Assembly (NCBI GenBank): GCA_011109175.1
Contig: RDEW01000041.1
Coordinates: 310,001-374,000, forward strand
Source: Dicyema japonicum
Taxonomy: Eukaryota; Animalia; Dicyemida
Length of the DNA stretch: 64,000 bases
Reading direction: 5' to 3'
Shown: piece by piece, positions 69 to 63,553 of the stretch
Layout: each line of letters opens with the position of its first letter
How positions within the stretch are numbered: the stretch's first letter is position 1
Notes under the pieces: model-generated
Database searches by the model: none
What the model was told of the DNA's origin: nothing
The model's input: the letters and a program-made list of their open reading frames with translations, nothing else
Program-made: the position numbers and the translations under genes

Positions 69-1598
69 TCAACTCCACCTGACAATTCGTATTCCTGCAG
101 ACGGAAGGGTAACAAATAAGTTAGATTTAATGTCATTTTCGATATAATACTCTTTCACAACTTTCTTCATGAATTCATCCACCATTTTAGTCGGCACGAT
201 GGAGACAGAACAACCTCCCCAACCAGCCCCCGTTAGTCGAGACCCCAATGCCCCAGCCTTTCTACAGATTAAATCAGATCTCCCACAAGCATTTTTTTAC
301 GAGTTGATCGAGCATTGGACAGCTACAGTCGTACAGAACCGAACAGCTGTGGTGACTCTTGTTCATTAGGTCCCCAGTTTTGTTTGAATGGTAAGATCCT
401 CGACTTCCTGAGCTGACTTTTGGCAAATCTCCACGAATTTTCTTACTCTCAGGGCCTCACCGTACACGTGGGTTGCCGTAAGTACAAGGAGAATTGTCTC
501 ACTGGAAATTATATCACACAGCTACACCTGAGCGCACATTCGGGGACAAAATCTTATCCATAAGCACTTCTTCAGAAATCTCGAGTTCATTGGCAACCTC
601 AGCACGTGTGTAATCGTTCATGTGGAGTATTTCCTCGACTTTCGATAGCATCTCCTCTAATGTGAGACCCAAAGATTGTTGCAAAGTGCCTAATTTGAGT
701 ACTTTCCTCCACTCCAAGCCGGTTCTTTTAGCCATGATCTTGGAATTCCTCAAACTGGGGTACCATTGCTGCAAGCCGGCACTCACTGACACGGACGTTG
801 AAGTGAGTTGTGGCAGCCTTGTTGAACTCTACACCAGAATTTGCCACCACAAAAGATATTCCTTTGGGAAGAGGTACTGAGGCGGTCTTCAGTGGGTCAA
901 ATTCGATTGATAGAGCTGATCCTTCCAAGACAAGAAAGAAGCTGCCTGGTCCATTCCACCTCCCTGGGTACCGATCAGTCGCTCAAACACGGCACACAAT
1001 TCAGCCAACTCACTCTGCCCGTTAAAACTGAAAATTTACCGCTGATTTGTCTCCAGCTCCGAGCACGTGGTATACAACTACAGCAGAAGCGCAGACAAGG
1101 GCACTGGAACTCGAAAGACCGGCTGATGGAGGGATTATTCCGTCTACGAGAATCTTAAAATCACCAAAAATGTAAACATTTAGTCCATTCAGTTTCCTTT
1201 TAAGGTTGGAAGTCATCCCTATTATTCCGCAAAGCACATAGTTGTACCAAAAAGGCTCAGAGAGGATGATTAAAGGTTCAGAGGTGGAGAAATCGCTAAA
1301 TAATGTTGATTAATACGGATATTTATCGGTGTTGGTGTTAAAAATGTTGATTTGTGAGGATTTGTTGACAGAAACTGCAATCACAACGTCCTGCATAAGA
1401 GCCATTGGGCAAACTCCGTATCCGCAGTAGTCAATGTGTTCACCTAAAATGTTTTTATTGGTTACCTATAAGATTTACTCTGCCTGGGGCCCGGACAAAA
1501 AATGCTGGTTTGCAACCAAATCGGTTTTCAAATAGAACAGATAAAGAGGTAAGCCTTTGAGAATTTTTGCTATCGTAAATTGGAATAGACTGCGACAT
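69..1598 (-). CDS. GALK2: Galactokinase / N-acetylgalactosamine kinase (GHMP family), 7 tiny introns
   Basis: Spliced translation gives [10 protein letters not shown]|[41 protein letters not shown] and [12 protein letters not shown]. Introns are GT..AG, 21-26 nt. Three one-base homopolymer deletions (about 929, 477, 374) must be assumed. Confidence 0.9.
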
Positions 1599-1739
1599 CG
1601 GTGGATTTAAAAATCTATTTATTTATTTTGATTTGGCTTGACTTAAAAAATATTTTTAAATAATTATCATTAAATTTTATTTACATTTTTACTATTTTTG
1701 ATAATAAATAGATTTACCATCTTGAAACTTGTCCGAAAA

Positions 1740-2010
1740 TAAGTGACTCAGAATCAATACTACCACGTGGTTTACGAGTTTACCTTGCAAGGTTAAGATG
1801 TGGACACCATTAAAATCTCCGCTCATACTTTATAAATTGGTTTTCGCCTCTGATGCACCTCGTTTCATTTGACGAACGAGGACCACCCTCCCCATGGTCC
1901 TCGCCGGGAAGCTCCAAAATATTGGAAGACGCTTAAGATAGGAAGAGAATCTGGATGGACTACGAGAGCTTGCGTATGACAGGGAAAATGGAGGAAGATG
2001 ACTTTGTTAC
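1740..2010 (+). mobile_element. 3' fragment of I/Jockey-like LINE
   Basis: Decayed LPRGLRVYLARLRCGHH motif; homologous to 11100-11400 and 30550-31010. Confidence 0.55.
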
Positions 2011-2229
2011 TAGTTCAAGTTGCACATGCTTTGTTATTAGAGACGAGCGATGCCTGACCGTCATCCAAAAAGAATTATCTCTTCCATGTTCGAGCAGATA
2101 TAGATGGATTGATGGTTGGAAGGGACGTGTCCCACTCCGATCGGGAGAACCTGTAAAACTTGTTTCAGGTGTATCCGGTGATTAAAAACCACCTTGAAAT
2201 AAAAAATTCCAAAGATTATGGAAAAATCA

Positions 2230-11039: not shown

Positions 11040-11410
11040 CCGATATATTGGAAAGAGGTTAAGAGTTAATAAATGTCTAATTAAGGTATATCCTGTTCCC
11101 ACGTCAAGTTAGCCATATTCTTTTCAACATGACATACATAAGCATCCGAAGACTCGATGATAATAAATTACTACAACGGTCCCCTCCTCCAATAGACCAA
11201 TCAGAATCTTCTCTTCTGAGGGACGTCCGGGTAAACCTGGCTCGTCTATGATGTGGGCACCACCACTCTCTACCTACGTACAATGTCTTTTGTCCCTTTT
11301 GGAACCTCTATTGACAACAAATCACCTACTTAAATGTCATGAATTAGAACACGTTCGCCTATAATGCCAGGACTGACCGAGGACAATTTCCGCCCTTGAC
11401 CCACAAGCTG
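11040..11410 (+). mobile_element. I/Jockey-like LINE 3' fragment
   Basis: PPPIDQSESSLLRDVRVNLARL*CGHH...HLLKC. Confidence 0.6.
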
Positions 11411-11419
11411 ACGATCTAG

Positions 11420-11545
11420 TACGTTGGATCGGCTCAATGATCCAAAGGGTCACCAAGATTCCACGTGAGACTGGATGGCTTTGAGAGCGTATCTCGATAG
11501 CTATCGTCAGAAGAAACAGCATGGCCATTCAAGCTCTCTAAATTA
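11420..11545 (+). mobile_element. CRE 3' terminal fragment
   Basis: PRETGWL..RISIAIVRRNSMAI. Confidence 0.7.
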
Positions 11546-11559: not shown

Positions 11560-14400
11560 AATAGCACTTCTGCGTTGCCATAAGCACGTAAAATGCCTAG
11601 GGGCTTGCTCGTGCCGTACACTCGACTATCCTCTCAGTCAGCCCTCTCCATCGTTTCTCGCGCGTTTACGAATATCCTCAAGATCGTCTCCAGTTTTGAG
11701 TCGTCCGCCAATTCGTGCGTAATCGTTGTTAAGGCAGAGAGGAAGCGTGGCCGACCCCGAAATCCAATTCCATGATTCGAATAGTAATCTTCCATGATTT
11801 GATTGCAAGGAATCACTTTGTCCATTCTCAGAACATGTCCGAAAAGTCGCCAGCGTGAGGTAATTACTTCTCTGCTCATTGGTTTGCATTTACATAATTT
11901 GTAGAGAGTGTCGTTTCTGATAATCTGTGGCCATTTGATTCCCGAAATTTTTCTCAATTGATTTCTATGAAATGTGTCTAGTCTGTCAAGGTCAGTTTTT
12001 GAAGTTCCCCATGTTCCCGAGTTATTTAATAGGACTGGTTGTATGAACGCGTTATATAATCGCATCAGAAGATTTAAGGAGATAAGTTTTCTGAGAGTCC
12101 AAATACTCCACATCTTTTTCAATGCACACGATGCCAACATCTTTCTACGAGCAATGTCCTCAGCATCACCCAAAAACGAGCCGAGCCTTTTAGTAAACCT
12201 TCATTTCTCATCAATCCGTGTCGGTAACCGATGAATCGAAGTTGACTCCGTTTTTTCTGAGTTGATCTTCAAAGACCACCTCTCCAGAACTGCTGTGGCT
12301 TTATCTACTACAGTTCTTAGTATCTCCACATTCTCAGACACAAAATCGATGTCATCAGCATATATTAATTCCACAAAATGATTATTTAAGTGACCCAATT
12401 CTTTTCTAACGTCCCTCAACTCAGCTTCCAAATAGATTGCAAAGAGAACTGGAAAAAGCGAGTCCCCTTGCGAAGTACCAATCACAGTCGTGAATTTTTC
12501 CGAATAGCCCTTCCCCACTTTCACTATGAGGCTCGTGTCAGCCAGCAAAAAACGCACAATCCTCAAACAGTCCTCATCAATTATGTCTTTGAGAACTTGC
12601 AGTAAGCCACCGATGACTCCATATCGATCTCCTGGTCTGAATCCGCTTTGACTTGGTGACAAGTATTGGTCAACTGAATTTGATATTCGATTCAATGTTG
12701 TAATCGACAATGTTTTTCGCAAAGTGGTCAAAAGCACGATCGGCCTGAGATTTTCAATTGGACTTGCAGATTTGCCGTGTTTTTGTAAAGGAAGTAGAAC
12801 TCCCATCGCGATGTCAATTGAACAATGAGTCCTGAATATCTTGTTGAATATAAAAGTTATCTTTTCTGCTGCTGGGTTGGTGCGTATTTTAACGACTCCC
12901 ACAAATATTGTCATATCCAGCTGCTCTGTTGTTATTCAGGCGAAGGAGTGCTCCGCGAATCTCGGAATCCGTAAACACATTATTAAGTGAACGAAACTGT
13001 CCTTCGAATTGTGTGATGGGTAAAATATCCTCTCGATTGAACTGCTTGCTAAAGTGTCGGGCTATAAGTGCAGCAGAACGGTTGGCGTCCAATTCAAAGT
13101 GACCAAACTCATCTTGAAATTTTAAATTGGTTTTAGCTGACCCGCGGTTGAGTAAACGCACAGCCATAAACATTTTTACACCTGAATGTGATCTTTCCGC
13201 TTCCAATACTCGTTGGTCCAAAAAGTCCGACCATGATCGGAGCACATTCTTCTTAATTTCGTGTTGGATTGTATTCCGCATTTTTTTTAATTCTAATTTT
13301 CGTTCAGGATCACAAGTTTCAATTTGAAGTCTTATATATCGTTGAGGAATAGACAATTCATTGACTGTCGAGTTATATGCTCCTTTATATCTTCCTTTCA
13401 TAGTATTTTCTCGAATCCCAACTGTTTCTTCGGCAGCCGTCATTATGGCTTCAGAGATTCTTTTCCACACGATGTGGGGTAGGCCATCCATAGAAATATT
13501 GGATAGATGCTTGTCTATTCGCTGCTGGTATCTCGTGAGGAGTACAGGATTATTAACTAATTCTTCTCCCGCTATCATCTGTGTTTTTCTGGGACGTGCA
13601 TGATTCGCAAATAATATTCCATAATGCCTGCTAAGATTCAATCGACAGACTACGATCTAGTGATCGCTATTTGCCAATGCTCTTCCATACGAACGAGAGT
13701 CCACTAATAATCTCTTGTGCGACTGCTTGAAATATAATCTATTTGATTGAATATTTTTTTTCTCTCCATTTTTCTTTGTTTTACAACCTACCCAGGTGGT
13801 CTTGTGTCGGGCGGCGTAATGAAATGCCGTGTTGCACAGAAACAAATCGTAGGTATTACAAAAGTCGATCATAAAATTTCCAGATGAATTTCTATATTTC
13901 CTTCCTTGATTACCAATGCAACGTTCACCTCTCCGTTAAATTCCTGACTTTGAATTCCAGTCTCCCACAATAAAAATTAGCGTGGACGAGCAGAGTTGAG
14001 AGTATACTCTTGATAATCTCATATAAAAATCATCAAGCTCATCCATAGATGTTAATAATCTTCCTGTGTGGAGAACATACAAATTTATGCCAGTCACAAT
14101 CGATCTCTTATTACGTAATCCGATATTAGTCTGGATAATAGCAATTTGGTCTGTGCCCCTCCATATTTTTTTTCCACAAGTGAGATGTGTATAGCAAAAC
14201 TCATCCCATAATGACGGGAGTCGGATGGTAGTCATATTAACCGGTAATTGTCATAGCATACATCTCGTTCCACTGTCACCTTCGTCTCTTGCAGACATGC
14301 CACACCGGTTTTGTATCATTCTAGATCCGTACATAGAATGTTCTGTTTGATGAATTCCTCTGACATTGAAAGATGTAATGGAAAAAAGCGTAGAGTGGAT
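11560..14400 (-). mobile_element. Degenerate RTE-clade LINE (APE endonuclease + RT)
   Basis: GDWNSK, NSDH, RPIVLL, QGDSL, YADD, RWRLFGHVLRM, GRPR; frameshifted. Confidence 0.9.
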
Positions 14401-16756: not shown

Positions 16757-19430
16757 TGGATATGTTATGTTATCCAATTAAGTCGTGTCCGACCCTTGGA
16801 GATCTCATGAACAGTTTCCTCTACTCTCCCCGATCCGTCGCAATTTTGAGTAGTCTTGATAAAGGCATTCCGGTGACGTCTGCCACCGTGGATAGCCACC
16901 GAGTCTTCGGTCGACCAGGTCTTTTCTTCCCAGTAATATTGCTCAGGATAATAGTTTTTTCCTGAGAGTCAGAGCGGACAACATGCCCAAAGAACGCCAA
17001 TCTGTGTTTTACGATTCTTCCTTCTAGCGAAATGTCCGTCTCCACCCGTTTGAGTACATCGGTGTTTGTTATTTTGGAAGTCCAAGGGATTCTTAGTAAA
17101 CTCCTCCAGCACCACAGTTCAAAAGCATCAATTTTTCGTCTATCCGACTTTTTCAGTATCTATGTTTCAGCGACGTATAGAAAAACCGGGAACACGATTG
17201 CATTAACCAGTTTGCATTTGGTCCTTAAGCAAATATTTCTGCTTTCCAAATTCTATTCATTCTCTGGAAGGCGATCCGTCCCATGGCAATTCGCCTCTTG
17301 ATTTCCAAGCCTCCGTCACCATTCAGATTGATTAGACATCCAAGAAAGACAACATTATCGCAACTCTCTATTTTCTCATTCCCAATTTTTAGTTCCATTA
17401 TTAGCAGTCGTCATAATTTTGGTCTTCTTGATATTTACCAATAACCAAAGACGGCGCTCTCTTCTCTGAATCTTAGAATCAACTTCCTCCTCTGTTTTAG
17501 CCAGCAAGGTTGTATCGTCAGCATAGCGCAAATTATTGATGTTCCTGCCTCCAATTTTCATCCCGTTATTTGATACAGTATCCAATTTAGTCATGATCAT
17601 TTCGGCATAAATATCGAATAGGATGGGAGATAATAAGCATTCTTGTCTTACTCTTTTACCAATTTTGAACCAATCGGTATCTCCATGCACTGTTCTAGCA
17701 GTAACTTCTTGATCCTTATAAAGAGATTTGATAAGCAATATTAGATGGGCAACGAATCCAAATTCTTTTAAAGCGGACCACAGCTTGTCATGTATAACGG
17801 AATCAAAAGCCTTCCGATAGTCAATGAAGCACATGTATACACTTTTTTGGGATTCATGGGCTTTTTCTATAATCCACCGGACATTTGCTATATGGTCACG
17901 TGTGCCTCGTCCCTTCCTGAATCCTGCTTGGACATCCGGTAGAATCATTTCGGCATTTGGCATTAGACGATGTTGTATTATCTTTAGAAGTATTTTGCTG
18001 ACGTGTGGAATTAAGGCTATTGTACGATAGTTTGAACAGTCCTTGCTATCGCCTTTTTTCGGTATTGAAATAAAAATAGATCTTTTCCACTCGCGTGGCC
18101 AAATACCAGTTTCCCAAATTTTTTGACATAGACTGATGATCGCTGTCACCAGTATGGCCTTCAACAATTCACTTGAGATGTTGCCAATCCCCGGTGCCTT
18201 GTTCCCTGTTAATTGCCGTCTAGTCCACACGTATTCCACCTCAAGGATTTTTTGCCCCTCACCCAACGTTGCTTTATCAACATACATGGGTAGGCACACG
18301 GTTTCTGAAAATAGTCGTTCAGTATATTCTCTCCAACGATTTCGGATGTTCTGTTGGCTTCGCAATTCTACACCACCTTTGTCCTTGATTTTGCCCATCA
18401 TTTTCGTCTAGGTAGTATGTAATCTTTTTAGTTGTAAATACGTATTCCTAGTGTGACCTCTCTTATAGTTATCTTCCGTTTTTTTGCAGCGTAACCTCCA
18501 GTAGTCTTCGTTATCCTTCCTGGCTGCCTTTTTGAATTCAGAGTTAAGTTTTCTGTCATTCCATAATTCATCAAGCATCCTTCCGTTCAAATCCAGTAAT
18601 CCAATATTGTGCTTAACTTCCATTGCGTATTCTGGTGGTATGTTTGAGACATCGAATTTCTCTACTCGGGGGTATTCCAAGTGATACTGAATTTCGTCCT
18701 AATTTTTGCAACAAGTAGCTGATGGTCTGTTCCACAGTCTGCCCCTGGATATGTTTTGACGGCTGTTATAGAGCTTTTCCAACGTTTTACGCACAAAACA
18801 TAATCAATCTGGTTCCTAGACATTCCATTTGGCGACGTCCAAGTGTATAATCGTCGTTTGTGCTGTTTGAACCATGTGTTAGTTATCTGAAATCCATTTT
18901 CCTGACAGAATTGGACCAGTCGATCCCCAGCATCATTTCTTTTCCCCAAACCAAAACTTCCCACAATATCAGTATGCATACACCCAACTTTTGAGTTGAA
19001 ATCCCCCATTATGTAGATTGTGTCCTTTTTGGGTATTCGTTTTAGTGCCTCTTGAAATTCATAATAAAATTGGTCAATTTCGTCATCCTTGGCAATAGAC
19101 GTTGGGGGATACACTTGCATGACCTTAATATTCAATGGTCGTCCACGGACGTGGATTAGTATTATCCGATCATTAAATATTCTATGACTTTCAATAGCAC
19201 GTGCAATCAAGCCTTCTCATTTCTCTTTTTACGACTTATAGTTTCCCTACGTCTAAGCCTCTTACGTTCCATGTTGCGAAATTGTGAGATTATGTGTGAC
19301 GAATACTCGAGATTTGATGTTTTGCAGCAACGTTGCTTCCAATTAGATCGTAGGAGAGTTTGCTCATAAGATTTTCTTGGCATTTAAATGCAGGGTAGGT
19401 TGCCAGGTCTTTCCCCATCAACAGCTCTTA
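16757..19430 (-). mobile_element. RTE (BovB-like) LINE, long degenerate copy
   Basis: APE (GDFNSKVG, NQIDY, GADCGTDH) and RT (NYRTIALI, DYRKAFD, LRYADD). The 3' end GGGTCGGACACGACTT is followed by a short TAACA repeat. Confidence 0.92.
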
Positions 19431-21456: not shown

Positions 21457-22568
21457 TTAAATCGGTTCCTCTGCTAGTCTTATATTTACTTGTTTGGTCT
21501 TCAGAGATTGATTCTCAACCTGCAGGAACCTCAACCATTCATGAAGACATCGACTTGTGCTTTCCACCTCTCCAACAATGATGCACAATGAAAGAATGGT
21601 TCCATCCTCCTGTTCGTGAACGGATTTGACCCGATTTAGCTTTCTGCAGTCCTCTTCATTCTCAAAGTAAAAGTTAAAGAAGCTTTCATCCCCCACGTGC
21701 ACAGTCCCACCCCCACGAGACATCAATACGTAGTGACTGAACACTCGACTCCTTAAATAGCTCCTATATGGACCGGAGATGAAAAACTCTTCATTTTCTG
21801 TTTTCTCCAGCAGTTCCCTCTGGCTGGGACTTTGAGAAGACAAAATATATGCAGGGACTCTCTCAGCCTCCAATTTATGGCACGTGATAACCGCCTCCAG
21901 GTCAAAGGACATCCTCTTCAAAGCCATCCTTGCAATTGCGAGATCCATCTCAGTTTGGTCGGCGATATCCGTAGGGAATTGGGACCGGCAATGGATTTCA
22001 TTCCTTTGATCTTGGGAACCCAGTACATTGTCCGGAGGTACTTTTTCATTGCGTGAGAATTAATTCCGAAGATACTGCTGATCACCATGCCCATGTCCTC
22101 GGATGGAATAACTCCTAAAATATTTCACAGATCCTTACCATTCTGTTCCATACACGTGAGCAAAAAGACGCAACAGTACTGCTGCTTGGGGTAGTGGATG
22201 AACTCCCTCTGCCACGCAGACTGTGCAACCATGGTCCCCTTTGGGAAGACTTCGAGGAGGTCGACATAGGAGTCGAGGTTGTCGTGGATGTTGAATTTCT
22301 TGATGGGTTAAATTGCTTACTTTCATGTTTTCTAAAGCTCCGTTGATGAACTCCACGTGTCCACGTCTGAGAGTGCCCTGTTTGTGGAGGTAGAAGTCGA
22401 TGGCGGCACGGAAGATCTTTATGTTGGTTTTCCGCGAATTTGTCGGCTGGTTTGTGAGAAAGCTCTCAAAGGTGATTAAATCTTTGGGCTTTTCGGGACT
22501 CCTTGAGAGATTTTCCTGACGAATACTTTAGCTGATCTGACTAGAAATATCATCTATCACGTACTCAT
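21457..22568 (-). CDS. ECSIT: ECSIT (Toll-pathway intermediate / complex I assembly factor)
   Basis: RRGHVEFI.GAL, LLEVFPKG, HYPKQQYCC, HEQEDGTILSLC, WLRFLQ. Introns are 22-24 nt. One or two apparent homopolymer frameshifts; start codon approximate. Confidence 0.88.
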
Positions 22569-22786
22569 AGGATTTAAATTATTTTTAATAAATTAATTTA
22601 ACTATTTTAATTTATGGAAAGGAGGAGGGATGTCAGAGAGAAGGGCTGGCTCATTGAGCGCATCTCCTTACAGATCGTAAGGGGAAATGCGCTCTCAATC
22701 CTGAGAGCAGCCAGTAGCCTTTAACTATTTGGTTTTATTCTTCAATAAATTGTTATTGTTTAAAAAAAATTTATGGACTTATCCGC

Positions 22787-23090
22787 GTGGATCCATGTGG
22801 TGCTGTGTGGTTAATTGGTTAAAGTTTTCTGCTTGCTTGTCTGTTCCTCTTCTCTCTTCCTATTAGAGTGGCGTCATGTGATCCACCTCTCTAGGTGACG
22901 CCCAGTGCCAGGTCGGCAAGAAAAAGGATCATTTGCTCTCCCCCACTCTACTGGACAGGTTTCCTCAACTGCATGTAATGGACGTCTTACCCTTTATGCT
23001 GATTCCGGATGGACTCTGTAGAAGTGGAAACTGGATACACTTCATTAGTTGTTCACTTTAACTTCTTTCTCGGTGTATCCGGGTTATTAA
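22787..23090 (+). mobile_element. SINE family A copy
   Basis: Near full-length match to 62411-62725. Confidence 0.88.
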
Positions 23091-23159
23091 ATGTTAAATG
23101 TTTTAATTTATAAACGACAAATTAATTATCTCATTTTGATCGGAAATAAAAAGTTAATA

Positions 23160-25760: not shown

Positions 25761-25896
25761 CCCACATCACTTAATTTGCAGTGTTTTCTTTATAATAACT
25801 TACTTACTTGACTGGTACCCACGTGATTTTTCATAGAGATACCTTCCTCAAGTAGGATGGAGTCAACTAAAGACTTACAGACTCCGATCTCGTACT

Positions 25897-26568: not shown

Positions 26569-26599
26569 TCTAATATTTTACAGACAATATTGACTGGGA

Positions 26600-27132
26600 G
26601 CCTCATGCAGATCGACTGTTTTGGCCTACACCCTCGTTCCTGCAGGAAGAGTGCAGGCAGATTTCCCAGACACATAGCCTTGAACGAAGTCGTTAAATGA
26701 GCTTTGGACGCCGCCGGACACCCCTCCATGCTCGAACCAGTCGGTTTTTACAGGCGGGACGGGAAACGACCAGATGGGATGACAATCTTCCCTTTTGAAG
26801 CCGGGAAACCTCTTGTCCGAGACGTTACATGCACCGACACTTTTCCTCTTGCAACCTACTCCAGAGTGCCTCTGGAGCCTGCTCTGCTGCTGAGAAGGCC
26901 GATAAGATGAAACAAGAAAAATACGCGGTCCTACCCAATGATTTTTTTGTTTGTTCCACTGGCCGTTTAAACGTCTGGTTCCTTTGCGCCTGCGACGCTG
27001 GAATTCTTGAGTCGTCTATGGAATCAGATCGCTACACGAACAGGAGACCTCGTGAGTGCTGCTGGTTATTTGAGCGAATCTCGCCATCCTGAGAGAAAAT
27101 TTTGCCACGCAGTCAGGGCAGCCGCTATATAA
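26600..27132 (+). mobile_element. CRE-clade 3' fragment
   Basis: GLHPRSCRKSAGRFPRH, LEPVGFYRRDGKRPDGMTIFPF, WLFERIS. Confidence 0.88.
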
Positions 27133-36880: not shown

Positions 36881-36971
36881 AGGTTAGTAAGAGAGATTGT
36901 TAGCAAATGTTTATAGTTACTAAGGTTTTGTTAGAAGGTTAATAAGAGAGATTGTTAGTGAGAGTTACTAA

Positions 36972-41759: not shown

Positions 41760-42720
41760 AGTTTTAGGGGGGGGGGGATTCTATTTGATAGCAGTCGAGA
41801 ACTCGATCTGAAAATCCCTAAGCATCTTGTGCTCAGGAGAATAAAATAATTTTTTACCAGAGAGCCTTTTCAACATTGAATTCAAAAATGAGAGATCCAC
41901 GTCTACATACTTGCAAACATTGACCGACTTCATTGGAGTCGATTCACAACCAAGCCAAGGCACTTTAAAACAGTGCTCTGTTCGATTGACATACATAAAG
42001 CTTTTGACTCAGTCTCGAGGAAAATTCTATCGAGAAAAAATATTTCAATCGGAGATCCCAGGGAAGCTCAAGTTTTGGATCACTAACTTCCTAAGTGGAC
42101 GTGTTTGCCTCGGAGGTCTGAGATCAATCTCACGGCTCCTCCCAACGGAGTCCCTCAAGAATCTCCTTTATCCCCTGCTCTGTTTAACCCTTTTCTGACT
42201 GATATCCCGACTCTTGAATCTGATAATGATGTTCTACTTTCTTATGCGGATGATATTGTGTTGGCTTAGCGAGATCAGGACATCTAGAGGCCACAGAAAA
42301 AATACAAATTAACTTGAACAGGCTTAATGCCTGGATAATGGAAAACGGCTCGTGGTGACTGCAGAGAAGTTGTCTACGTCACTATTTACCTCTGACAAAA
42401 GATTGGGAACGAAGACAGTCATCTCGAAGTTAAACAAGGTCGGCATCCCTTTCAACAGATGTCAAGGGAACTTGGGTGTTACAATTGATATGCTGACGGA
42501 GCGTTGGATTGTGAAGATCACCGAACCTGGACATACGCCTCTGGAGGCCCTTATGAGACTAGTCTTCAGATCACGGGGAAATGGACCTGAAAATGTACGT
42601 TCATGCACGGGCACGAAGGAAGAACACCGAGCAAAGATGAGGTCTCTGTTAAAATGCATCGGGATCACGTGATAATTAGTTGGTTTTACCATGGTCTTGG
42701 TATAAATAAATAAAAATAAA
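41760..42720 (+). mobile_element. I/Jockey-like LINE, RT and 3' end with internal deletions
   Basis: GVPQ..LSPLLFN, LSYADDIV, C-terminus CTGTKEEHRAKMRSLLKCIGIT*, (TAAA)n tail. Confidence 0.8.
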
Positions 42721-42800
42721 GTAGTCCTCGCCGACATTCTCGACGTTGCGTTGCCTCTCACGATTGCAACAGAAATCAACCGGAGAAGACACCGGGTCTC
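42721..42800 (-). mobile_element. CRE 3' terminal fragment
   Basis: ISVAIVRGNATSRMSA. Confidence 0.65.
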
Positions 42801-42804
42801 TAAT

Positions 42805-44185: not shown

Positions 44186-45799
44186 TAAAAGAATTGAGTT
44201 TTTGGTGGTTGCCCCTCTCTACCGACGTATGTACACTGGATGAGGTAACAGATGTCCTCTGTTCCTTTTGTTACCTCTCCGAGTTGACAGCAAATCACTT
44301 TTTGAATGTCTTGAATTAGAATACTGTTCGTCTACAATGCCAAGACTTTTGCTGTGTCCTACTTAATAGCCGCTGGTGTCCTACAGGTTAGTGAGGCCGG
44401 GGTAACTAACTAAGTTGTCTCTTGTGTCAAAATCTCATCCCCCATTACGTTAAAATCAAACGGAATTCAAACCACCAATCTTTGTGTACCCAACATTTCA
44501 TAATTGGTCAGAAGATCCAGGACTGTATAAGCAAAAAGCTACACAACCTCAATCGTCGCCAATTGGGATATTCCATAGTTATTGCAATTAGTAATTAACA
44601 GATCTGTCTAGGAAGTACAATAACATTTGTCACTCACTTTTGATTGACTTTAATTAGTCACGGCAGACACATTTGAGCTACTCGAGGTAATCCGTCTATA
44701 ATACTTTGAGAAGAAATCAAGTGAAGTAAGTGATCTAATGTTCTCTTTAAAGTTGCATAATGGGGAGGACTTTCGATTCCATAGTAACCCATGGGAGACG
44801 AATTTTTTTAATAACATTCAATCGATTAGTTTATTTTAGTAACACTACTCAATTTTCCTACCCACTGAGTGAGTCCAGGGGGTTCTTATATTCTCGTCTC
44901 CCAAAATGTGTTTCCCTGTCTAGCAAAGCATAGGCTCTCTCCCATAATTTGTATGAGAACCCAAGATCTCTGCCAATAAGTAATCGTAAGATTCATTAGC
45001 TTTAACTTTGTGACTGAGTTTTATTGCAGGAAACTCACTCTCTGCAATCAAATGTGTTAAAGCTGTATTAAATCTCACAGAACTAGTTCTACAGACTATT
45101 CTAACACTCAAGGGAGCCCACGTGCATTTGTAAAGCACATAATAAATTGGTGTTTTTCATTATCTCTCAAATCAAAAGGGTAGATCCAACAAGAGAATGT
45201 CTCTTCAGAATGAGTGAAGGGAATAATAAGATTATCAATATTTCAACAAAAGCATTGATTACCCATAAAAAAGTAATCCATCTCAGCGTGCTAACTAATG
45301 AATGATTGTCATGAGTAATTAATACATTATTGACATATCGACCTTTGTCTGAGACAATTTGTTTGATTGCCCACTTTCCTAATCACCCCTCTTCAAACAC
45401 CTAACTTACCGACACTAAAGACCGAACGTCCCACCATCAAGTCACACAAACCCTTCCTTCAACCACCGCACCAAATCAAGACTAAGACTGACAGTAATGA
45501 TGAAAAGGCCAATTCGTAATATTCTCTGATAGTTAGCATGATGTGAGTGATACGTGAGATGTGATATAAACAGATACTTAATATTATAGGATTGTCGCTA
45601 ATTACCCGCCAAGTGGTAAAAACGACAGAACGACTGCGGCAGACATTGAATTGACTTATTTATAGCGAATACTACTAAATTTGCAAAACACGTACTGTAG
45701 GTTTACATCAAATACGCTTATTCTGACTAAACACTACTAAATTTTCTAAAGTTAGTTGATGATTCTGATTACAGTGCTCTATAAAGCTACACAGATTGA

Positions 45800-46956
45800 C
45801 TGCGGGGACTCGGGTTCTCAGACTCCTGCAACCCCACTGAGAAGAACGGAACCAGAAAGGAAGACTCAGATGATACGAGGACTCTGTCCTTTCTGGACCA
45901 ACTGAATGTTCTACGATCACCGATTGAGGATCTCCCGAACAAAGTCCTCACAAAAATCCTCAACCTCCTCAACTCAGTTGAACGAATAAAGGGCTCTCAG
46001 GTATGCCGAAAATGGCGGGAAATACTTTCCAAAGAGGACATATGGGCTGAAATCTCCTTGGGAGACTGCGACTCCTTCGACCTCCTTCATATTGGCATGT
46101 TCATTGGTTCTCGAGGATTTTCTGTGGAGAAAATTGATGTCAAAAATGCCGCCAACCTCATCTACCGCTCCATCAGATTTATGACCCCCATGAAGCCTAC
46201 TCTGAAATATCTCCGACTCTGTCGCCTCAGTAACATGAGAATGGACGTGATCCTTGACTTCCTCTCAGCGTGCCCTAACCTGGTTCAGTTGGACCTTTCC
46301 AAGTCCTCATTTCTTAATCCTTTGAGGAGTCTGAGGAGGATTCCCCCAAACAGTGGTCTTTCCTACCTCAATTTGGACAGATGCGACACCCTCACTTCTC
46401 AGGTGCTCAAAAATTGGACAAAATTTGCTCCCAACCTGTCCTTCTTCGTCCATCTGAAGCACTGTACCAGACTCACGGATGACGGAATATCCGTTCTTGT
46501 TAAAAACTGCCCCAATCTCACGGAAATCACAATGGATTGTTGTCCATTGCTCACAGACGAGGCAATCACGTGCATTGCCCGACTGGGGGCCACCCTAAAG
46601 TCCTTCAGTGGAAAATATTGCTCGATATCTGACCATGGAGTCCACAACCTGGCCATCAAATGTACAAATCTGACACAACTGAACCTCCACGGATGTCCCC
46701 TGGTTGGAGAATTGGGGATCCTTGCTTTGTCGAGGAACTGCAAAATCCTAAAAGTGATTGACCTCTCTCATACCCAAGTAAACGACATCGCTCTCAGAGA
46801 ATTGATCAAGCTGGGATTTATTGAACAGATCAGGGTGGAGAATTGCCAAACCTCTCCGACCAGATGATTGATTTTGTGGTTAATGGATGGAATATGGTCA
46901 TCTTGGACAAAACTGTAAGAAAGAGAGCTCCAAGTGCCACCATGCTTATCATTTGA
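45800..46956 (+). CDS. F-box/leucine-rich-repeat (FBXL) protein; start unresolved
   Basis: F-box DLPNKVLTKILNLL..VERIKGSQVCRKW followed by Cys-containing LRRs (LKHCTRLTDDGI, LNLHGCPLV). One apparent frameshift near 46847. Confidence 0.85.
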
Positions 46957-52059: not shown

Positions 52060-52403
52060 ATAGAACGTTTCGGGTGGCTTAGTGGTTAGGTGTCGGGCTT
52101 AAGTGCTTAGGCTACGGGTTCGAATCTCGCTGCTGTTCACCTGGTGGAAGGTTCCACGCATCTACGATGCAGAAATGGTTTGACGAGTGACGCCGTCATC
52201 AGTGAATTATCACTGCGGAACTGGATTGTCTAGAAAGGACACTCACACAAGAAAAGAAAAAAAGAAGTGAAGATCACTCCTTGGTTCTACGATTAGTTAA
52301 ATTAACTGTTCTTTACTTAAATAAAGTGTGTGTCCTGCCTATGCGGAGCTATAAAATACTATGGCTCTCGTGAAAAGGCTTTATTATTATTATTATATAT
52401 TAT
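52060..52403 (+). mobile_element. tRNA-derived SINE (family B), intact
   Basis: A-box TGGCTTAGTGG, B-box GGTTCGAATC, (TTA)n tail; TSD TACAGTAGCCAA at 52048-52059 and 52404-52415. Confidence 0.9.
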
Positions 52404-52499: not shown

Positions 52500-53420
52500 T
52501 CTAATACATCCGAGACGGGCTTTGTCTAGTTCCTCCTGTCGGTGTAGGACGTATTCTTTCAAAGTATCCACCATTGTGGGACTTCCTCCACTGAAATAGA
52601 AGAGATAAGGATTTCCTTTGAATTCGGCCACAGTTAAGTGGATTCAATGACGCCTCTAGGAATTGAAGAAGGTAAAGATGAAATCTTTAGACTAGGCAGC
52701 GTTTTAGGAATATAAGCACATCTAAATGCTAGTGACAGCACTACCACTATGTTATTTCGTCTCTAAAAACTCACAGTGGCAAATAATGAGCAATAACAAA
52801 ATAAGCCCAATAATCTATGACAGGTTATCGACGAACTATTTAAGCATTTATAAGTAAGAAAAAGATGAGCTACGTAATGTGGTAATCACTCTTGAAGGCA
52901 AATGGATAGATAAGTCCATTTTTTGAGATATGAGCCATACTATGTTCTACGAACAACCAAAATAGCTAAAGATTTATTATTATGGACTAATCAAACAGGC
53001 ATTAGTCTCCTGTAAGATCACATTGAACGTTGTTAAGTCGAGATTTTCTCATATACAAAAATGAAGAGGATACATCCGTGGTAGGGTGATTAAGACATTA
53101 AATCAAAAAAGTCAAGTCACCAATACAATCACATTTGCCCAAGTGACCACAAAAACTCTTGCACATAATTCTGAGTTCCCTAAAGAATAATTACGTCCAG
53201 AACGTTAGATGACGTACCAAGAATAACCCCCACCACTAAGTTAAGGCCACGTGATTAAATCCTACTACGGTACAAATATGCGTAGTTTTATAAAGACCAC
53301 AAACCCACAAAGATCTTCGCCACCACATAAATACACCCTACATCAAATGAAGAAGGCCAAGTCACCAAACACACGTGGCCAATAAGTCAATACTAAGCCC
53401 TAAACTAGGTCATACAAAAA
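52500..53420 (-). CDS. Candidate spliced or degenerate membrane protein, possibly a rhodopsin-type GPCR
   Basis: Hydrophobic exons between short GT..AG segments; IFVPGGVILGTSSNVLDVIIL resembles TM1. Confidence 0.25.
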
Positions 53421-53439
53421 TGTTATTATACAGAACAGT

Positions 53440-55014
53440 TTAATTACAGGGAAACTTGAACTCCTCATAGCTGGGATCAGATCTAATATCCACGATGATG
53501 TGGTCCCCAAAAGTGTTGATAACTCGCAGCAAGTCCCTCCGTTTAATACCGCAGATATGCATTATCTCCTCAAAATGGTACTCCCCGTTGAAGTAGGTCG
53601 AAACACGTGAAAGATTTTTCCTATCTCTCAAATCCCCAACCTCCTCAGGGGGGTACTCGAAAAGGAAGAAGTAGTAGTGAATTTGAACCAGAACATCGTT
53701 CCATATCAGCCATTCGATCATTTCTATAAATTTGGCCTGTCATGCAAATTGGACCCAACCTGACTGACTTGAGTGTAGATCTCCAATATCTGTGACAGGG
53801 GGACAGCGATCACCACCTTGTTAAGGACCCACAGAAGAGAGTGGTGAGGGAATCTCCGACTGAACTTATTCTGGATCACGTGCATGTCACATCTAAGCTC
53901 GGAATAACAAAAACTCAGATTCTAGGAACTTCTCCGCGTTTTGTACATGGAGACCCCGGTAATCGGAAATATGAGTGAAGCCATTCCCCAATATATCAAA
54001 TAGCCAGCCAAATATCTCACCTACAGTTAAAAACATCCTCAACCCTCTCCCAGCTCTCCCCCATTCTGTTGGCAATGCCTGAAAGAGAAATAATCGTGGA
54101 ATGAGCTCTCAGAAATGACTCAAACTCTGATAGCATGACGATGTTGTTCTTCTTGTAGAGGATGAGAGAATGATAAGATCTGATCCTTCCAAGGATAAGC
54201 TCAAATGAAGTCTGAGGGGTCCCTGGGACATTTACAGAGGAAAGAAAGGAAAGTTGATGTTCTGCCATGGACATTTGAATCCTAGAACTGTTGTTGAAGA
54301 CAAGATCCAAGTCCATGCACTTGCTCAATCTAATAGTTAGGGACGAGGAACTGGCTGAAGGCTGCACCGAAGAATTTTGACAAGGATGAGGACTCGGCAA
54401 CATTCCTAAAGTATTTCAAGAGATTCGGAATCTAAATTTAAACACATGGACGAAAAACATCTATGACGTTCTGATCGACTTCCTTTTCACAAATGCCGAC
54501 TAGCATCGACAACTCAGATAGGAGACCAGACTTTTTGTCCTCATTGATGAGGACCCGATTGATCTTCTTGAGGATGTCGACGTAGAAGTAAATAGTCTGC
54601 TGATTCGTTTCGCTCTATGTGCTAAAAATTCCAAACTGGAACAGTTATGATCGAATTTAGTTCAATTTTTGTCGATCCCTCCTTCCCACAGTAGAAGCAT
54701 TCGTCATATTCCAATTTGATGAGGGATATGATGTACTTGATGTCATCTGCCTGCAAGTATAAGATTTCTTGGTTCAAGAGCGCCTGTTTGTTGAAGACAC
54801 TGGATCGAAGTAACTTAAAGAGACTAAATTTAAGGGATGAACAAACTTGTCTATTATGGAGTGGTTTGGAAACTTCCCTAGGGACTAAGATCGGAGACCT
54901 ACCGTATTCTGAGTGGGACCCATCGTATGGGTAGTGGAGTATTATGCAATCGCAGTGACCAGATAACAGGCAGACTGTCAATGAGAGCAACTGATCTGGT
55001 TGAATATCATCCAT
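53440..55014 (-). CDS. NPRL3: GATOR1 subunit NPRL3-like
   Basis: IILHYPY, IRSYHSLIL, YLIYWGMASLIFPI, LVQIHYY, YFNGEYHFEEIM. Tiny introns; one apparent A-run frameshift. Confidence 0.82.
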
Positions 55015-55127
55015 ATATAATTTTTTTTGAAATTAATTAGAAAATTATTAATTATTTATTACATTTTATGATGTGCTTATTTCTCCTGTTCTCATTCCTA
55101 TGTTTTTTCCTACTGTCTACCCTAAAC

Positions 55128-55260
55128 GTGGCGCCATGAGGTGCTACATGAGTAGTTGTATTTTCCTCCCTTCTGATGGCGTCACTGGACCCACCTTACT
55201 GAGGAGGTGCCCAATGCCTGGCCGGCATCAAGAGGATCCAATAATTCTTCCCGGGGCAAC
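55128..55260 (+). mobile_element. Diverged relative of SINE family A
   Basis: gtggcgccatg..gtgct...tggcgtca...cccaatgcctggccggcat...ggatc. Confidence 0.5.
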
Positions 55261-55534
55261 GTCGTTACCTGGTGACAAGTTCTGGAATGCTGGAACGAGT
55301 CAGGATCGAGGAGTTAGTTAGTTTGGTTACCCTTGGTCTTTGGAGGTAATTTTAATTTAATTTTAAACAGAGGGATTTTTGAATTAGCATGGCGGCATGC
55401 GGTTCACCTGTTGTTGTGGAGGCTCCCGGTGAATGTTTTGGATGAAAAAGAATTGTTTGAACTTCTCTACTCCTCTACGTCCTTTGGAAGGATGGCCTAC
55501 CAAGTTAAATAAATAAAAACAGAGAAACTGCCTC

Positions 55535-55815
55535 GTGGCGTCATGTGGTGCTGCGTGGCTAATTGGTTGAAGTTTTCTGCTTGTTTGTCTGCTCTTCCTC
55601 TCTCCTCCTATTAAAGTGGCGTCATGTGATCCACCTGTTTAGGTGGCTCCCAGTGTTTGGCTGTCACGAAAAAGTATCATTTGCTCTTCCCACTCCACTG
55701 GAGGGGTTTCCATAACTGCAAGTATGGACGTCTTTTGCCCTTTATGTTGATTCCGGATGGATTCTGTTTCTGTAGAAGTCGAAACTGGATAAACTTAATT
55801 AGTTTTTTACTTAAA
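55535..55815 (+). mobile_element. SINE family A copy
   Basis: Near full-length match to 62411-62725. Confidence 0.88.
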
Positions 55816-57324
55816 TTAAATTAAAAAACAGAGAAACGAGGAGGCCCCACCACAATTAAGTTCTGGACACTACCTCCTAAGAGACGAATCTTGCTCTTGG
55901 CTTCCCCCACCGGATCAATTATCATCGATTCTACAAGAAGCTTTCTTTTACCCGGGACTTCCGATGAACATCAGAGACATGTGGAAGTGTCCGGCTTGAC
56001 GTCTAAGGACAGCGGACCTCTTACAAGGTAGCTAGGTCGGGTTAATAACTAACTAACTTTTTGTACTATATGTAAAGACTGTTTGAAGGAACCGGCTTCG
56101 TCGCCATGCCCTTTCTACTTTAAATACGACCATAAGAAAATCCACCTCTTTTTGGTCCTCCTTCGATATTTGTGTCACATCTGACTGATCTCTAGGAATG
56201 TCCACTTTTGGTGTAACTTTTCTGTTAACCACTGATTTTTTCTACTTGAAGTGACCGGGGGTGAATAAATACTATGTGGGCCATTTAATGGTTCGTGACG
56301 ACTTCTGGACGTTTGAATGATTGAGCGATTTTTTACCTGTTCGCTGGCCTTTAAAATTGAATGGCTGGTAAAAATGGGTGCCTCGCTTCTCACTCGCATA
56401 AAATTGGCTTTTGTTCAGCTGCTCTGATCCTTTCTAGTACGGTCACGTGCTAACCGACTCTAATTTTTGGTTGCAACTAGTCAATATTAGTAAAAACCAT
56501 ATAATCATGTTAACAGTAATCATACACGTGCAAAATTATTTAAGAACAGAATGGTCGAAAAATTGTGTTAACGATCTAGGTCGATGAATTTTATTTGAAG
56601 CCAACACTGATGTATCCAACGTTTCTTCTTTCCATTAAGTGGCTCGTGTAGTCTCCCGAGTCCGTGATTTCATCAATGAGATTATAAGATGAGGACGGGA
56701 TACATCGTCATGAGACGATAAAAGCATTTACCTCATAAACTACGTCATCGCGCTAGAAAATACATCATTTTAGGTCATTTAATTATGCTGACTTTGATTA
56801 TTGAAGTAAATAAACCTTAAAGCTAAATGTGGCCACATTGGCTGATTAGCATTTCTAGAATTCCTGAAAGCTAAGATTATGCGTCAGCAGTCAGTTTGTC
56901 CTCACATAAGGAAACCTAAGGGACGTTCGTTCAAAAACAGGGAACGGGGCTACTAATGAGCCAACTAAGGACACTAATGAGGCCCACTAATCTGCATTCA
57001 TCGATATCCACGTGAAACTCAGAGAAACCTAGAAATATTAAGAACTGAGATGAATATTAAAAAACCACAAATTGGACGTGTAACTAGGAATAATCCAAAA
57101 CCACAACTTAGATTCGTCGCTTTGGTACCGCCAAGACAATCAAAACAGCAAATTGGACACACAGCTTGAAGAGTGCTTTAGAGAACATTACTTTGACCCA
57201 CTGAATCAATCTCCAAGGAAACGAACTCTAATTTTGACTGATGGCTTTAACTAACGCCTAGAATACCATTCCAAGAATTTGCGCCAAATTTCTGTATAAA
57301 TATGGCAATATAATCAAATTAATA

Positions 57325-59039
57325 ATGCTGCGGCTAGCGTTTGGGAAGCACGTAAAATGGTAATTCACTATATAATACTTTTTTGCTTCAAGGAGAGTCT
57401 TAGCAATGAGTCAGCGACACAAATCCTTCACAATCGACAACATCAATCCAAATGCGAAAAAGATGGAATATGCCGTCCGAGGGCCGATTGTCACCCTTGC
57501 AAATCAATTCTCTGCCGATCTCAAAGAAGTTGGGTTAAATTTCATAACTTCAGGGCAAGACCCACGTGTTCGACAAAGTGTACATGGCCAATGTAGGAGA
57601 CTGTCACGCCTGTGGACAACAACCACTTACATTCATAAGACAGGTCCTTCATATACTTTATTCCACAGTTGGCCGCGGCATGTACCTACCCCAAGGCTCT
57701 GTTGGAGTCAGATTTAATCCCCTCTGACGTAAAAAGCAAGGCAAAGGCGATTCTGGCAGATTGTGGTGGATCCAGCATAGGTATCTGACCAAGTTACACA
57801 CATAGGGTCATACAGTCAGAGTCCAGGGGTGGAGATTATTAGAAAGCACGTGGCTGAGTACATTTCTGAAAGGGACGGAATCTCCACGGATTTCCATGAT
57901 ATAATACTTACCAACGGAGCCAGTGAGGGAATAAAGGTCCCCTTTACCTATTATTTCAGACAGTTCTAAACATGTGTGCCGGTGGAGAAAGGGCTGGAGT
58001 GATGATACCGATCCCTCAGTACCCCCTTTACAGTGCCACACTCACGGAACTCAACGTGGATCAAATAAACTACTATCTAAATGAGGAAGAGGAATGGGCC
58101 CTTAATACAGATGAGCTCGAAAGATCCTTCGCTGAGGCGTCCGCTGTATGTACCCCACGTGCAATTGTTGTGATAAATCCCGGGAATCCGACCGGAGCTG
58201 TGCTAGACAAGGCTAATATAGAATCAGTCATTGATTTTGCATACAGAAATAATCTGGCTATCCTTGCCGATGAGGTCTTCGAGTTCTCAGAGTCCTAGGT
58301 CTACCAACACAACGTCTATGCAAAGAATTCGAGGTTCTGGTCCTTCAAAAAGATCTTGCATGAAATGGGCCCGAAATACGGGGACGTGGAGTTGTTTTCT
58401 TTTATGTCTTGCTCTAAGGGTTACATGGGAGAGTAAGTCATGGGTCCTGAACTAATAGATGTGGAGCACGTGGGGGATACTTTGAAATGTGCAACATTTG
58501 CCCAGAAGTGAAAGCTCAGATTCACAAGTCGTTCACTGCCCGACTCTGTTCCACCGTTTATGGACAAGTTGGTCTAAGCTCCTCATTTTAGGTGATAATG
58601 GACGCTGTCGTGAACCCACCCAAGCCAGGAGAACCCTCATACGACTTATTCCACCAGGAACAGGAGAAGGTCCTCAGTGAGCTAAATGCGAAATCTAAGC
58701 TGGTCACCAAGGCTTTCCAGTCCACGCCTAATATGTCATGCGTTGAATTAAAGGGATCAATGTACGCCTTCCCAAAATTGGATCTCCCACAGAAGGCCAT
58801 AGCTGCGGCTGAGGTTCATGGTGGACTTATGTAAGAGTCAAAATATAACCCCTGACGCGTTCTACTGTTTTGAAATGCTGAAGAACACGGGAGTCTGTCT
58901 GGTACCGGGAAGTGGATTCTGCCAAAAACCGGGGACCTACCACTTTAGGACTACAATATTGCAGGACATTTCTGTTCTCCCTGATATGCTGGAAAAAATA
59001 CAGAAATTTCACACCGAATTTATCAGTCGATATTCTTGA
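57325..59039 (+). CDS. GPT2: Alanine aminotransferase with probable mitochondrial presequence, 9 introns
   Basis: [37 protein letters not shown]|VYQ, PLP-lysine motif SCSKGYMGE|[20 protein letters not shown]. Introns are 22-33 nt. Confidence 0.95.
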
Positions 59040-60743: not shown

Positions 60744-60810
60744 CAGAAATCCATCGTTGGAATTAAGATTTTCAAATTAATATTTTTACAAAATTAGATT
60801 TAAGGTAAAT

Positions 60811-61940
60811 TTTTTTTTAGTTTAATTTATTTATTTTTTTAAATAGAAGTCAGGTAGTTGCCGCCCTCACTGCGTGGCTGTTCCCTCTCAAAATTGCGAG
60901 CGAAATTCGCTCAAATAGCCAGCGGCGTTCACGGAGATCTCCAGTGCATAAGGTGATCCGGTTTCCAAGACGTCCGAAAAACTCGAGTGTAGAGGGGGAG
61001 TAGGATCCGGAAGTCTCCATAGCAAGGGGAACAAATTTGACATCATCGTGAAGGTCGACGTATTTAACGAGTTTGGCCTTCTCAGCCTTTACGGATGCTG
61101 AACAGGCCCTTGTAGCAATCTCGTAAGATTTTTCTGGGCGAACGTGTCTGTACATGTCACATCCCAAACCAGTGGTTTCCCGGCCTCAAATGGAAATATG
61201 GTCATCCCGTCCGGTCGTTTCCCGTCACTTCTGCATAACCCGACCGGTTCAAGAATGGCCGAGTATCCAGCAGCATCCATAGCTCGCCTGACAATTTCAT
61301 TCAGAGCCTTGTGCCTTGGGGATCTGCCAGCGCTCCTCCTGCAGGCGAGAGGGTGCAGGCCATAGCAGTCTATCAGGATGCCACATCGGCACGGGTGAGG
61401 TACACATACTTTTAGTCCCAGCCGCAGAGAGATACCAGTTCTAACGCATTCATCATCCAGAAAAGTGCCCAAAGCTCCATTGGGGATGGCGTTTAGCCAA
61501 GCTCCGCTCTCAGGGGAAGCCCCCGAAAGCAAACAAGCGCGTCGGTGCTGATTGGAAGATTCCAGTAGGAGTCCAAATGATTTCCACATAATAAGTTGTC
61601 CAGGTTTCGCTGGCGATCTTGGGAAAAGCAGGGGGAGGTTGGTGGCATTCCAGGCTTCTCGTGCGTGGATTATCTCTTGGTCAGTTGAGAATTCGGGTGG
61701 GGAGTGTAGAATCCTCCTGACCAAAGGTTCGCAGGCCGTGAGTGATGATGAATAAGCAGGAAGTGAGACGTTCAAAGTTCGACGGATTCCAAGACCCCGA
61801 ATCTAACTGGGAGTGTAGCCTGCATCCATGTATCATCGTCGAATCGGACATTAAATATTTGCTCCGTCGAGCTGAGGAGAGACAAATCAAAATTCTCGAG
61901 CAGCTCCAGTTGAGAATAATATGGAGCTGTCCTTAGTAGT
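60811..61940 (-). mobile_element. Young 5'-truncated CRE-clade retrotransposon
   Basis: SGAWLNAIP, knuckle CRCG..GLHPLAC, DGKRPDG, WLFERISLAILRGNSH, A-rich tail; flanked by a 65-66 bp duplication. Confidence 0.92.
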
Positions 61941-62237
61941 CAGAAATCCATCGTTGGAATTTAGATTTTCAAATTAATATTTCTACAAATTAGATTTAAG
62001 GTAAAATAAATTTATTTTCATATTGATATGACACACTCCCTAGAGGTCAAAGTGGACGTGGTCTCTACTTCGGTTTCTTCACCTGAGGATGCAATCGTTT
62101 CAGACGTTAGTAAATAATGAAAATAAGATCTTGGATTCCGACATGATATGTCTTCTACCTGATCAGAAGGATATTTCATTATGAGATATTTTTAGATCCT
62201 AAGGGACTCTCTATCTGAGTCTGATTTAAGTAGAGTA

Positions 62238-63553
62238 TGTCACATGGGCAGCCTGTTACATTATTTCGACCTTGAAGAGGTCTTTTGATTATCCGACATT
62301 TAATTTTGTATATCCGATTTATATCGTGATTTAATCCTGTTAAATTAGTTTTTTATTCATAAATGTTATGATTATAAAGATTTTATTTTTTAGAGATACA
62401 ACATGACCAGGTGGCGCCATTTTGGTGCTGCGTGGTTAATTGGTTTAAATTTTCATCTTGCTTGTCTGTTCCTCCTCTCTCTTCCTAATAGAGTGGCGTC
62501 ATGTGATCCACCTGTCTAGGTGACGCCCAGTGCCAGGCCGGCATGAAAAAGGATCATTTGCTCTTCCCCACTCCATTGGAGGGGTTTCCACAACTGCATG
62601 TAATGGACGTCTTACCCTTTATGCTGATTCCGAATGGACTCTGTAGAAGTGGAAACTGGATACACTTAATTAGTTGTTTACTATAACTTCTTTCTCGGTG
62701 TATCCGGGGTTAATAAATAAATAAATATTTTTTTATAGCGGTAAACCTATATTTCTAGCGTGATTTATAGCATGGAAGATTATTTTGTTGCAATGGTTTC
62801 TTACAAGGGTTTTGTGAAAGATTGCGTTGAATATCAAACTTTAAGAGATGCTTTGCATGATAAATTTCCCGAAAATCTTCCGAGGCACCGAAAATATAGG
62901 CTTGTAAAGAAGATAGAGAATTTTTCCATTATCAATGACACACATTATGACTTAGATAATTAAGTGATGAGTGTGCGATTCCAGAACAAATTGACGATTT
63001 GGTTAATTGTTCGACTCCAGAATCTATTGAAAATTCACGTAGTTTGATTTAAAAAATTTATATCTAGATAATTCCCAGTCAGATAATTTGTGTCCGAATG
63101 CAAAGAGATTCAATTTCGAAATTAAATCGATTGAAGAAAATTCTAATTATTACAAAGCTATGAACAGGAAAATGAATGTTCATAATAGTAAATATACTTT
63201 TAACATGGGAGATAAAGTATGAATCAAAAACATTAATAAATAGGTTTGGGCTAAAAAGGACTTTGGAACAAATCCCTCATTGCGACTGGATAAGTTTGAG
63301 TCTCAGTATTATCCAGTTGCGAAATAATTAATATTTTATCGAATAATCACGTGGAGGTAGCTTTAAATAGTTTAATTTGATAGATAAAAAATTCGAAAGG
63401 AGAAATGTCGACTGTATTAATGAGTAGACTAAAAAAGTTACTTAAATTTAATTTTTTATGGTTAATAAATCATTTATAAAATTAATTGAAGTTAATCTTG
63501 GTTCAAGGTTAATGTAACAGGCAGCCCATAGGTATCGCTTGGCCCATGTGACA
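62238..63553 (+). mobile_element. Ginger-like DNA transposon (TGT...ACA), internally deleted
   Basis: TIRs TGTCACATGGGC ... GCCCATGTGACA plus a subterminal inverted block; TSD GAGTA at 62233-62237 and 63554-63558. Internal ORF FPENLPRHRKYRLVKKIENFSIIND resembles the region before a Gypsy-type integrase zinc finger. Confidence 0.75.
62411..62725 (+). mobile_element. SINE family A reference copy, nested in the Ginger-like element
   Basis: About 310 bp with a (TAAA)n tail; at least 6 related copies in the window. Confidence 0.88.

Follow-up and report, generated by a model that had tools for sequence, protein, structure and literature searches.

A genome-wide excess of the exact palindrome CACGTG in the dicyemid Dicyema japonicum, a possible chromatin mark for Max-type proteins

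Why does a single six-letter palindrome, CACGTG, recur through the exons, introns and intergenic DNA of a tiny animal parasitic in octopuses? The question is raised by a 64,000-nt stretch of the Dicyema japonicum genome (positions 310,001-374,000 of contig RDEW01000041.1; 40.2% GC), hereafter the window, in which an exact word count finds 51 sites between 465 and 63353. An earlier note, made from the letters of the window alone, had counted about 51 by eye, and 39 of the 39 coordinates that it quoted are correct; it gave about 8 expected sites at about 38% GC, and we obtain 9.3 from base composition (at 40.2% GC) and 6.5 ± 2.6 from dinucleotide shuffles (largest shuffle, 12). We analysed about 340 kb of letters in all, took sample word counts from 246 kb of two scaffolds, and drew genome-wide figures from an assembly of 67,542,437 bases in 377 contigs; the published genome is 67.5 Mb in 377 scaffolds, with 36.7% GC, 5,012 genes and 49% repeats (PMC6736024).

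We find that CACGTG is the top-ranked hexamer under Markov models of every order from 0 to 4, in the window and in the 246-kb sample alike, and that at order 4 the window still holds 51 sites against 29.6 expected, a null that is itself raised by CACGTG. Genome-wide, the word occurs 21,851 times against about 5,400 expected from dinucleotides (4.0-fold, using the dinucleotide ratios of the sample), while the reversed word, as a control, occurs 4,535 times (0.87-fold). The excess belongs to the exact hexamer, with one-mismatch words at 0.74-1.42 times their order-1 expectation in the 246-kb sample, the neighbours CATGTG and TACGTG at 1.23 and 1.13 times genome-wide, CACGCG at 0.9 times, and other CpG palindromes in the window reaching at most about twofold; CpG itself is mildly low (ratio 0.8-0.9) and similar to GpC. 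A slight G at +1 is the sole trend in the flanks, which hold no consensus and no CDEI-like or USF-like extension. In a small baseline of four loci from other eukaryotes (68 kb), 11 sites are seen where 6.8 are expected. Site density is 1 per 1.25 kb in the window and 1 per 3 kb in the genome, and the distribution within the window is patchy, with zero sites across 25826-37169; these 11.3 kb are empty although they include a DcpS-like gene and further predicted genes.

Coding sequence was examined with a small ab initio gene finder, trained with CACGTG masked and giving rough gene models, together with database searches made exon by exon; the coding tests cover 41.6 kb of coding exon, with synonymous codons shuffled within genes as the null. 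Coding exons hold 43 sites against 9.3 expected, and the excess is present in each reading frame (17, 14 and 12 observed against 5.9, 1.2 and 2.2), in homology-supported genes (22 against 3.5) and in the genes of the window (16 against 2.6). CACGTG is chosen in roughly 35-60% of the places where the protein allows it. His-Val pairs number 28 where 15 are expected, 17 of the 28 being spelled CAC GTG, a count that includes two sites later placed in introns. At site 58156, Pro-Arg-Ala are the commonest residues among 120 homologues, and the CACGTG there is thus a synonymous choice. Codon or dipeptide bias can be rejected as the cause, because the excess outlives synonymous-codon shuffling in all three frames. 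The signal is real: an exact hexamer, genome-wide, and unexplained by composition, codons or repeats. The descriptions of near-expected one-mismatch words and of flanks lacking a consensus were accurate, and the proposal that some genome-wide system generates or preserves the site gains support from the genome-wide and all-frame coding excess: the ratio stays well above 1 after codon and Markov correction, and neither restriction to the window nor a similar enrichment of many CpG hexamers is found.

The sites favour genes without favouring promoters. Relative to base composition, enrichment is 8.1-fold in gene bodies and 5.4-fold, with no peak, in the 200 bp upstream of 30 genes (measured from predicted start codons), so that promoter focus, which the earlier note had also denied, is not seen; other flanks within 1 kb, where counts are small, lie at 1.9- to 9-fold, mostly 4- to 9-fold. 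Dispersed repeats and unassigned DNA stand at 3.5- to 3.9-fold, and retrotransposon or transposase ORF (open reading frame) regions at 1.25-fold (4 sites in 23 kb). An origin of the excess in repeats is rejected, as the flanks of the sites are unrelated and their density peaks in single-copy genes. Diverged repeat copies keep CACGTG in 48 of 87 comparisons against 27.9 expected (1.7-fold; rank 48 of 1,953 hexamers; the pairs are not independent of one another), and some individual copies have gained the word. Site 11462 lies in a short dispersed repeat (11394-11544) and is intact in five of eight copies at about 78% identity, site 42666 in another (42494-42803) whose family position, also present at 60552, is intact in seven of ten aligned copies, and the site at 23358-23363 is copy-specific, with one- or two-letter variants in three other copies. 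A search for orthologues in other dicyemids found none. Among other words, GACGTC is about fourfold enriched in repeats only and apparently belongs to one repeat family. Tandem satellites with units of 47-55 bp, most of which carry CACGTG, are found at C40:26426-26876, C124:1034178-1034324 and C212:173703-174044, and very high-copy short repeats lie in the window at 22783-23112, 52071-52394, 55100-55900 and 62411-62737, with a summed depth of about 1000-3000 times single copy.

The spacing between sites carries a signal of its own. Genome-wide start-to-start pair counts in 30-bp bins are 248 at 16-45 bp, 384 at 51-80 bp, 589 at 86-115 bp, 605 at 136-165 bp, 447 at 196-225 bp, 433 at 276-305 bp and 396 at 356-385 bp, where uniform scatter would give 221 per bin. 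Short distances are avoided, at 0.6 times the plateau of about 415 pairs (276-385 bp; p ~1e-10), and this dip is specific to CACGTG, since ordinary hexamers of this genome, in a local sample, cluster at the shortest distance (1.35- to 1.7-fold). Pairs at 86-165 bp form a hump, about 1.3- to 1.45-fold commoner, with no second peak at 276-305 bp that would indicate multi-nucleosome periodicity. Repeat copies make up, by eye, about 10-14% of the pairs listed for the short and middle bins; their share leaves the dip deeper and the hump at about 1.3-fold.

What might read such a word? A helix-loop-helix (HLH) profile search of the genome gives 40 matches above cut-off, in a species for which only 16 homeobox genes are reported. 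Sixteen of the 30 basic helix-loop-helix (bHLH) loci inspected have His5, Glu9 and Arg13, at least 15 without the one that is ARNT-like; Arg13 together with His5 is the group B signature that specifies CAC half-sites (PMC8431614). Eight further loci look like derived relatives, the loci form several paralogue groups in a weakly resolved 30-column tree, and both of the loci that were tested have Max as their best match, a gene of which the lophotrochozoans listed in PMC5381572 have one copy each. These features suggest, from protein sequence, a lineage-specific expansion of Max/Myc-type bHLH leucine-zipper (bHLH-zip) genes in Dicyema, and the candidate of expanded bHLH-zip proteins or a chromatin anchor, also raised in the earlier note, has thereby gained evidence. 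One paralogue group has lost His5, with Met, Gln, Arg or Thr in its place, and most of its members have CACGTG in their own coding sequence. Apparent Atonal-like group A genes, judged from the basic region, also occur in this nerve-less animal (C314:390666, C312:1313360 and C320:306239).

From the excess, its frame independence, distribution and spacing, and the Max-type gene family, we infer selection, binding by Max-type proteins and a role in chromatin: to our mind there is an even chance that selection maintains CACGTG as a signal in the DNA itself, across host genes and their surroundings, where it would be bound by Max-type bHLH-zip dimers and serve as a general chromatin mark. Dimers of the expanded family would bind across host genes; instead of switching promoters, the bound sites would mark chromatin in general, for example by holding the chromatin of host genes open or by licensing it against silencing as the default. 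If one bound site served about 50 bp or more, a second site nearby would add nothing. MYC-MAX binds E-boxes close to either end of the nucleosome (PMC10338342); two sites so bound would be separated by roughly 100-145 bp, a distance close to the hump at 86-165 bp. Blind mutational bias should instead produce random scatter and depleted precursor words, and codon choice in every frame, indifference to promoters, weakness in transposon ORFs and short-range saturation fit a selected, bound site better. A more far-reaching version, which we put forward only tentatively, is that after the loss of DNA methylation and most transcription factors the expanded Max family was co-opted, and that CACGTG became a genome-wide self mark at nucleosome-scale spacing, bending codons, residues and a splice donor and determining which DNA remains active or is kept in the soma.

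Several observations weigh against a Max-read mark. The secondary words of Myc/Max are barely raised (CATGTG and CACGCG, as above) and the flanks show little preference, a specificity tighter than a transcription factor would be expected to show. Many of the bHLH paralogues are recent duplicates and eight lack His5; some may be haplotype copies or dead genes, and the expansion might have followed from the excess of sites or have arisen alongside it by chance. No coding CACGTG was found in Rho, UBC, DcpS or TRMT11. The share of repeat copies among the listed pairs makes the hump modest, and a 10-bp helical phase, hinted at in 144 listed pairs (scan p 0.07), is not significant in the pre-stated test (121 against 101).

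The rival that survives best, although we consider it unlikely, is neutral accumulation, in which a bound protein or a repair pathway lowers the mutation of CACGTG, or converts near-sites to it, in germ-line host-gene chromatin with no benefit per site. The strictness for the exact hexamer and the copy-specific gains and retention in repeats would follow naturally, and steric exclusion could produce the short-range dip. Protection would also keep neighbour words undepleted. Against this rival stand the undepleted precursor words and the approximately 8-fold lower loss rate that would be required; moreover, broken long interspersed element (LINE) regions of the same window gather no sites. The latter, identified as transposons from their translations, comprise a reverse transcriptase region at 11634-13688 on the reverse strand and further LINE-type regions at 23379-24995, 28439-29096 and 60850-61775; a broken LINE with endonuclease and reverse transcriptase at 17376-19210 (reverse strand) has sites 17897 and 19198, the former common to a 92% identical copy.

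Less probable again is that CACGTG marks DNA that is to be retained, amplified, replicated or segregated when the somatic genome is rearranged, possibly through a bHLH reader, as with Cbf1 at yeast CDEI. The preference for host genes over transposon ORFs and the frame-independent, DNA-level nature of the signal suit this idea, as do the somatic chromatin elimination and selective amplification reported in dicyemids, according to work cited in PMC6543705. No DNA joints were seen at 11 sites in 6 kb, a weak test made on contigs only from three DNA runs of one mixed sample. A CDEI-type extension (RTCACRTG) occurs at background rate outside repeats and 3 of 171 sites are flanked by an 86-mer of 90% AT, which leaves the centromere candidate of the earlier note without support, and short high-copy repeats and satellites carry sites too.

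A true analogue of cyanobacterial HIP1, in which a sequence-specific DNA methyltransferase and methyl-directed repair create and keep the sites, seems improbable to us, even though a frame-independent palindrome of restriction-type length is what it would use. Profile searches of the genome with PF00145 (C5), PF02086 (Dam/D12) and PF02384 (N6) give no match while detecting bacterial controls, although divergent or intron-split enzymes can be missed. PF01555 (N4/N6) has one weak match, which translates as what we take to be a TRMT11-like tRNA enzyme, and MT-A70 has only two loci, as expected for METTL3/14, both intron-split, so the search does see intron-split genes. With no PF00145 candidate, DNMT1, DNMT3 and perhaps DNMT2 appear to have been lost in D. 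japonicum; a search for MBD, run without a working control, was blank. Nor is there a signature of deamination repair: the C>T neighbours CATGTG and TACGTG, the precursors of T:G repair, are undepleted, and CpG is only mildly low and similar to GpC. The methylation-repair model, the first candidate of the earlier note, is therefore unsupported.

Ordinary Myc/Max promoter E-boxes of housekeeping genes have a known motif, known readers and two suggestive sites (1764 and 19811, upstream of genes), but the missing upstream peak and an excess of some 16,000 sites, where genes number about 5,000, make this account very improbable. An artefact of repeats, composition, codon bias or assembly is scarcely credible: some repeat families and 47-48 bp satellites do carry the word, but density is highest in single-copy genes, flanks are unrelated, the excess outlives the Markov and codon nulls, and DNA and RNA contigs agree with the assembly at 11 sites, among the matches listed.

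Individual genes illustrate the settings of the sites (coordinates are those of the window), which, as had been described, lie in exons, in short introns and between genes; the exons have support from Pfam, PDB or RNA, and the introns measure 23-36 nt. Pfam or PDB support exons of the galactokinase, ECSIT, PEPCK, leucine-rich repeat (LRR), NPRL3, alanine aminotransferase and quaking genes; the quaking gene has CACGTG in a 36-nt intron. An ab initio model of a galactokinase-family gene (366-1720, reverse strand; GHMP_kinases_N on exon 1040-1153) has exonic sites 465, 603 and 1064, with 1764 just upstream, and the ECSIT gene (21457-22553, reverse strand; ECSIT_N and ECSIT_C) has exonic sites 21694, 21881, 22153 and 22354 in frames 0 and 2. 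In the PEPCK (GTP) gene (36972-39138, reverse strand), Pfam and PDB alignments cover both exonic sites, 37260 and 38514 (Ala-Arg-Val codons), while site 37170 lies in a predicted 25-nt GT-AG intron (37157-37181, reverse strand). Site 37361 overlaps the donor of a probable 23-nt GC-AG intron (37345-37367, reverse strand), a non-canonical donor in an ultra-short intron, for which frame reasoning decides between two candidate donors, as only the GC cut preserves the frame. An F-box/LRR gene (45759-46867, forward strand; LRR matches) has exonic site 46567 in frame 2. The NPRL3 transcript (53375-55272, reverse strand; HTH_NPRL3 and a spliced RNA contig) has exonic sites 53604 and 53877, and sites 53372 and 53248 lie at or past the 3' end of its RNA contig. 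The alanine aminotransferase gene (57406-59039, forward strand; homology and RNA) has exonic sites 57563, 57847, 58156 and 58467, the last three covered by RNA; RNA contigs show introns of 23-25 nt, five of which are confirmed in this gene. Upstream of it, an unannotated spliced transcript (56505-57064; an RNA contig with a 24-nt gap) has sites 56525 and 57009 and no ORF above about 30 codons, and is a possible long non-coding RNA. Separately, a long fibrocystin-L (PKHD1L1)-like gene with dozens of tiny introns has few sites for its length, about 1 per 1.6 kb.

Highly iterated palindromes strong enough to overrule codon choice are known from bacteria; text searches of open papers found no report of one in an animal or in dicyemids. 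The function of HIP1 is still open, and CACGTG has a candidate reader with solved structures, so the role of such a word becomes directly testable. The finding bears on how an animal of about 30 cells, whose transcription factors are few and whose genome shows no detectable DNA methylase, distinguishes its genes from transposons, and the bias can distort codon and phylogenetic analyses of the long-branch dicyemid lineage.

Among known systems, the CDEI element of yeast centromeres has a CACGTG core bound by Cbf1, but the Dicyema sites have no CDEI/CDEII context. The bacterial uptake sequences DUS and USS also bend coding sequence; we know of no uptake biology in Dicyema. Statistically, CACGTG behaves like cyanobacterial HIP1 (GCGATCGC) and the alternate HIPs (PMC4390886, PMC5861425), with one palindrome far above other words, in coding and non-coding DNA, frame-independent, without promoter focus and perhaps conserved, to judge by the retention in diverged repeat copies. 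It is nevertheless not classed as HIP1, because no cognate methyltransferase is detected; it is also a hexamer in an animal genome, enriched 4- to 9-fold rather than 15- to 300-fold, scarce in transposon ORFs, and its spacing signal lies at 50-165 bp, whereas that of HIP1 lies at 10-90 kb. Exonic 'duons' (e.g. PMC6790085) likewise place transcription-factor words within coding exons, but in Dicyema a single word dominates the whole genome, at 5-9 times the codon nulls. The Myc/Max/Mad E-box (PMC8431614, PMC10338342) is the identical hexamer, and proteins with group B basic regions are present and expanded; the Dicyema sites differ in that they saturate gene bodies and alter codons rather than cluster at promoters, and in their weak preference for particular flanks or secondary words. 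As a mark of host genes, CACGTG may have its nearest functional analogy in the periodic A/T clusters (PATCs) of C. elegans, which pervade endogenous genes and are proposed to shield them from silencing in the germ line (PMC4947018): PATCs are non-coding and periodic, whereas CACGTG is an exact palindrome that is also exonic.

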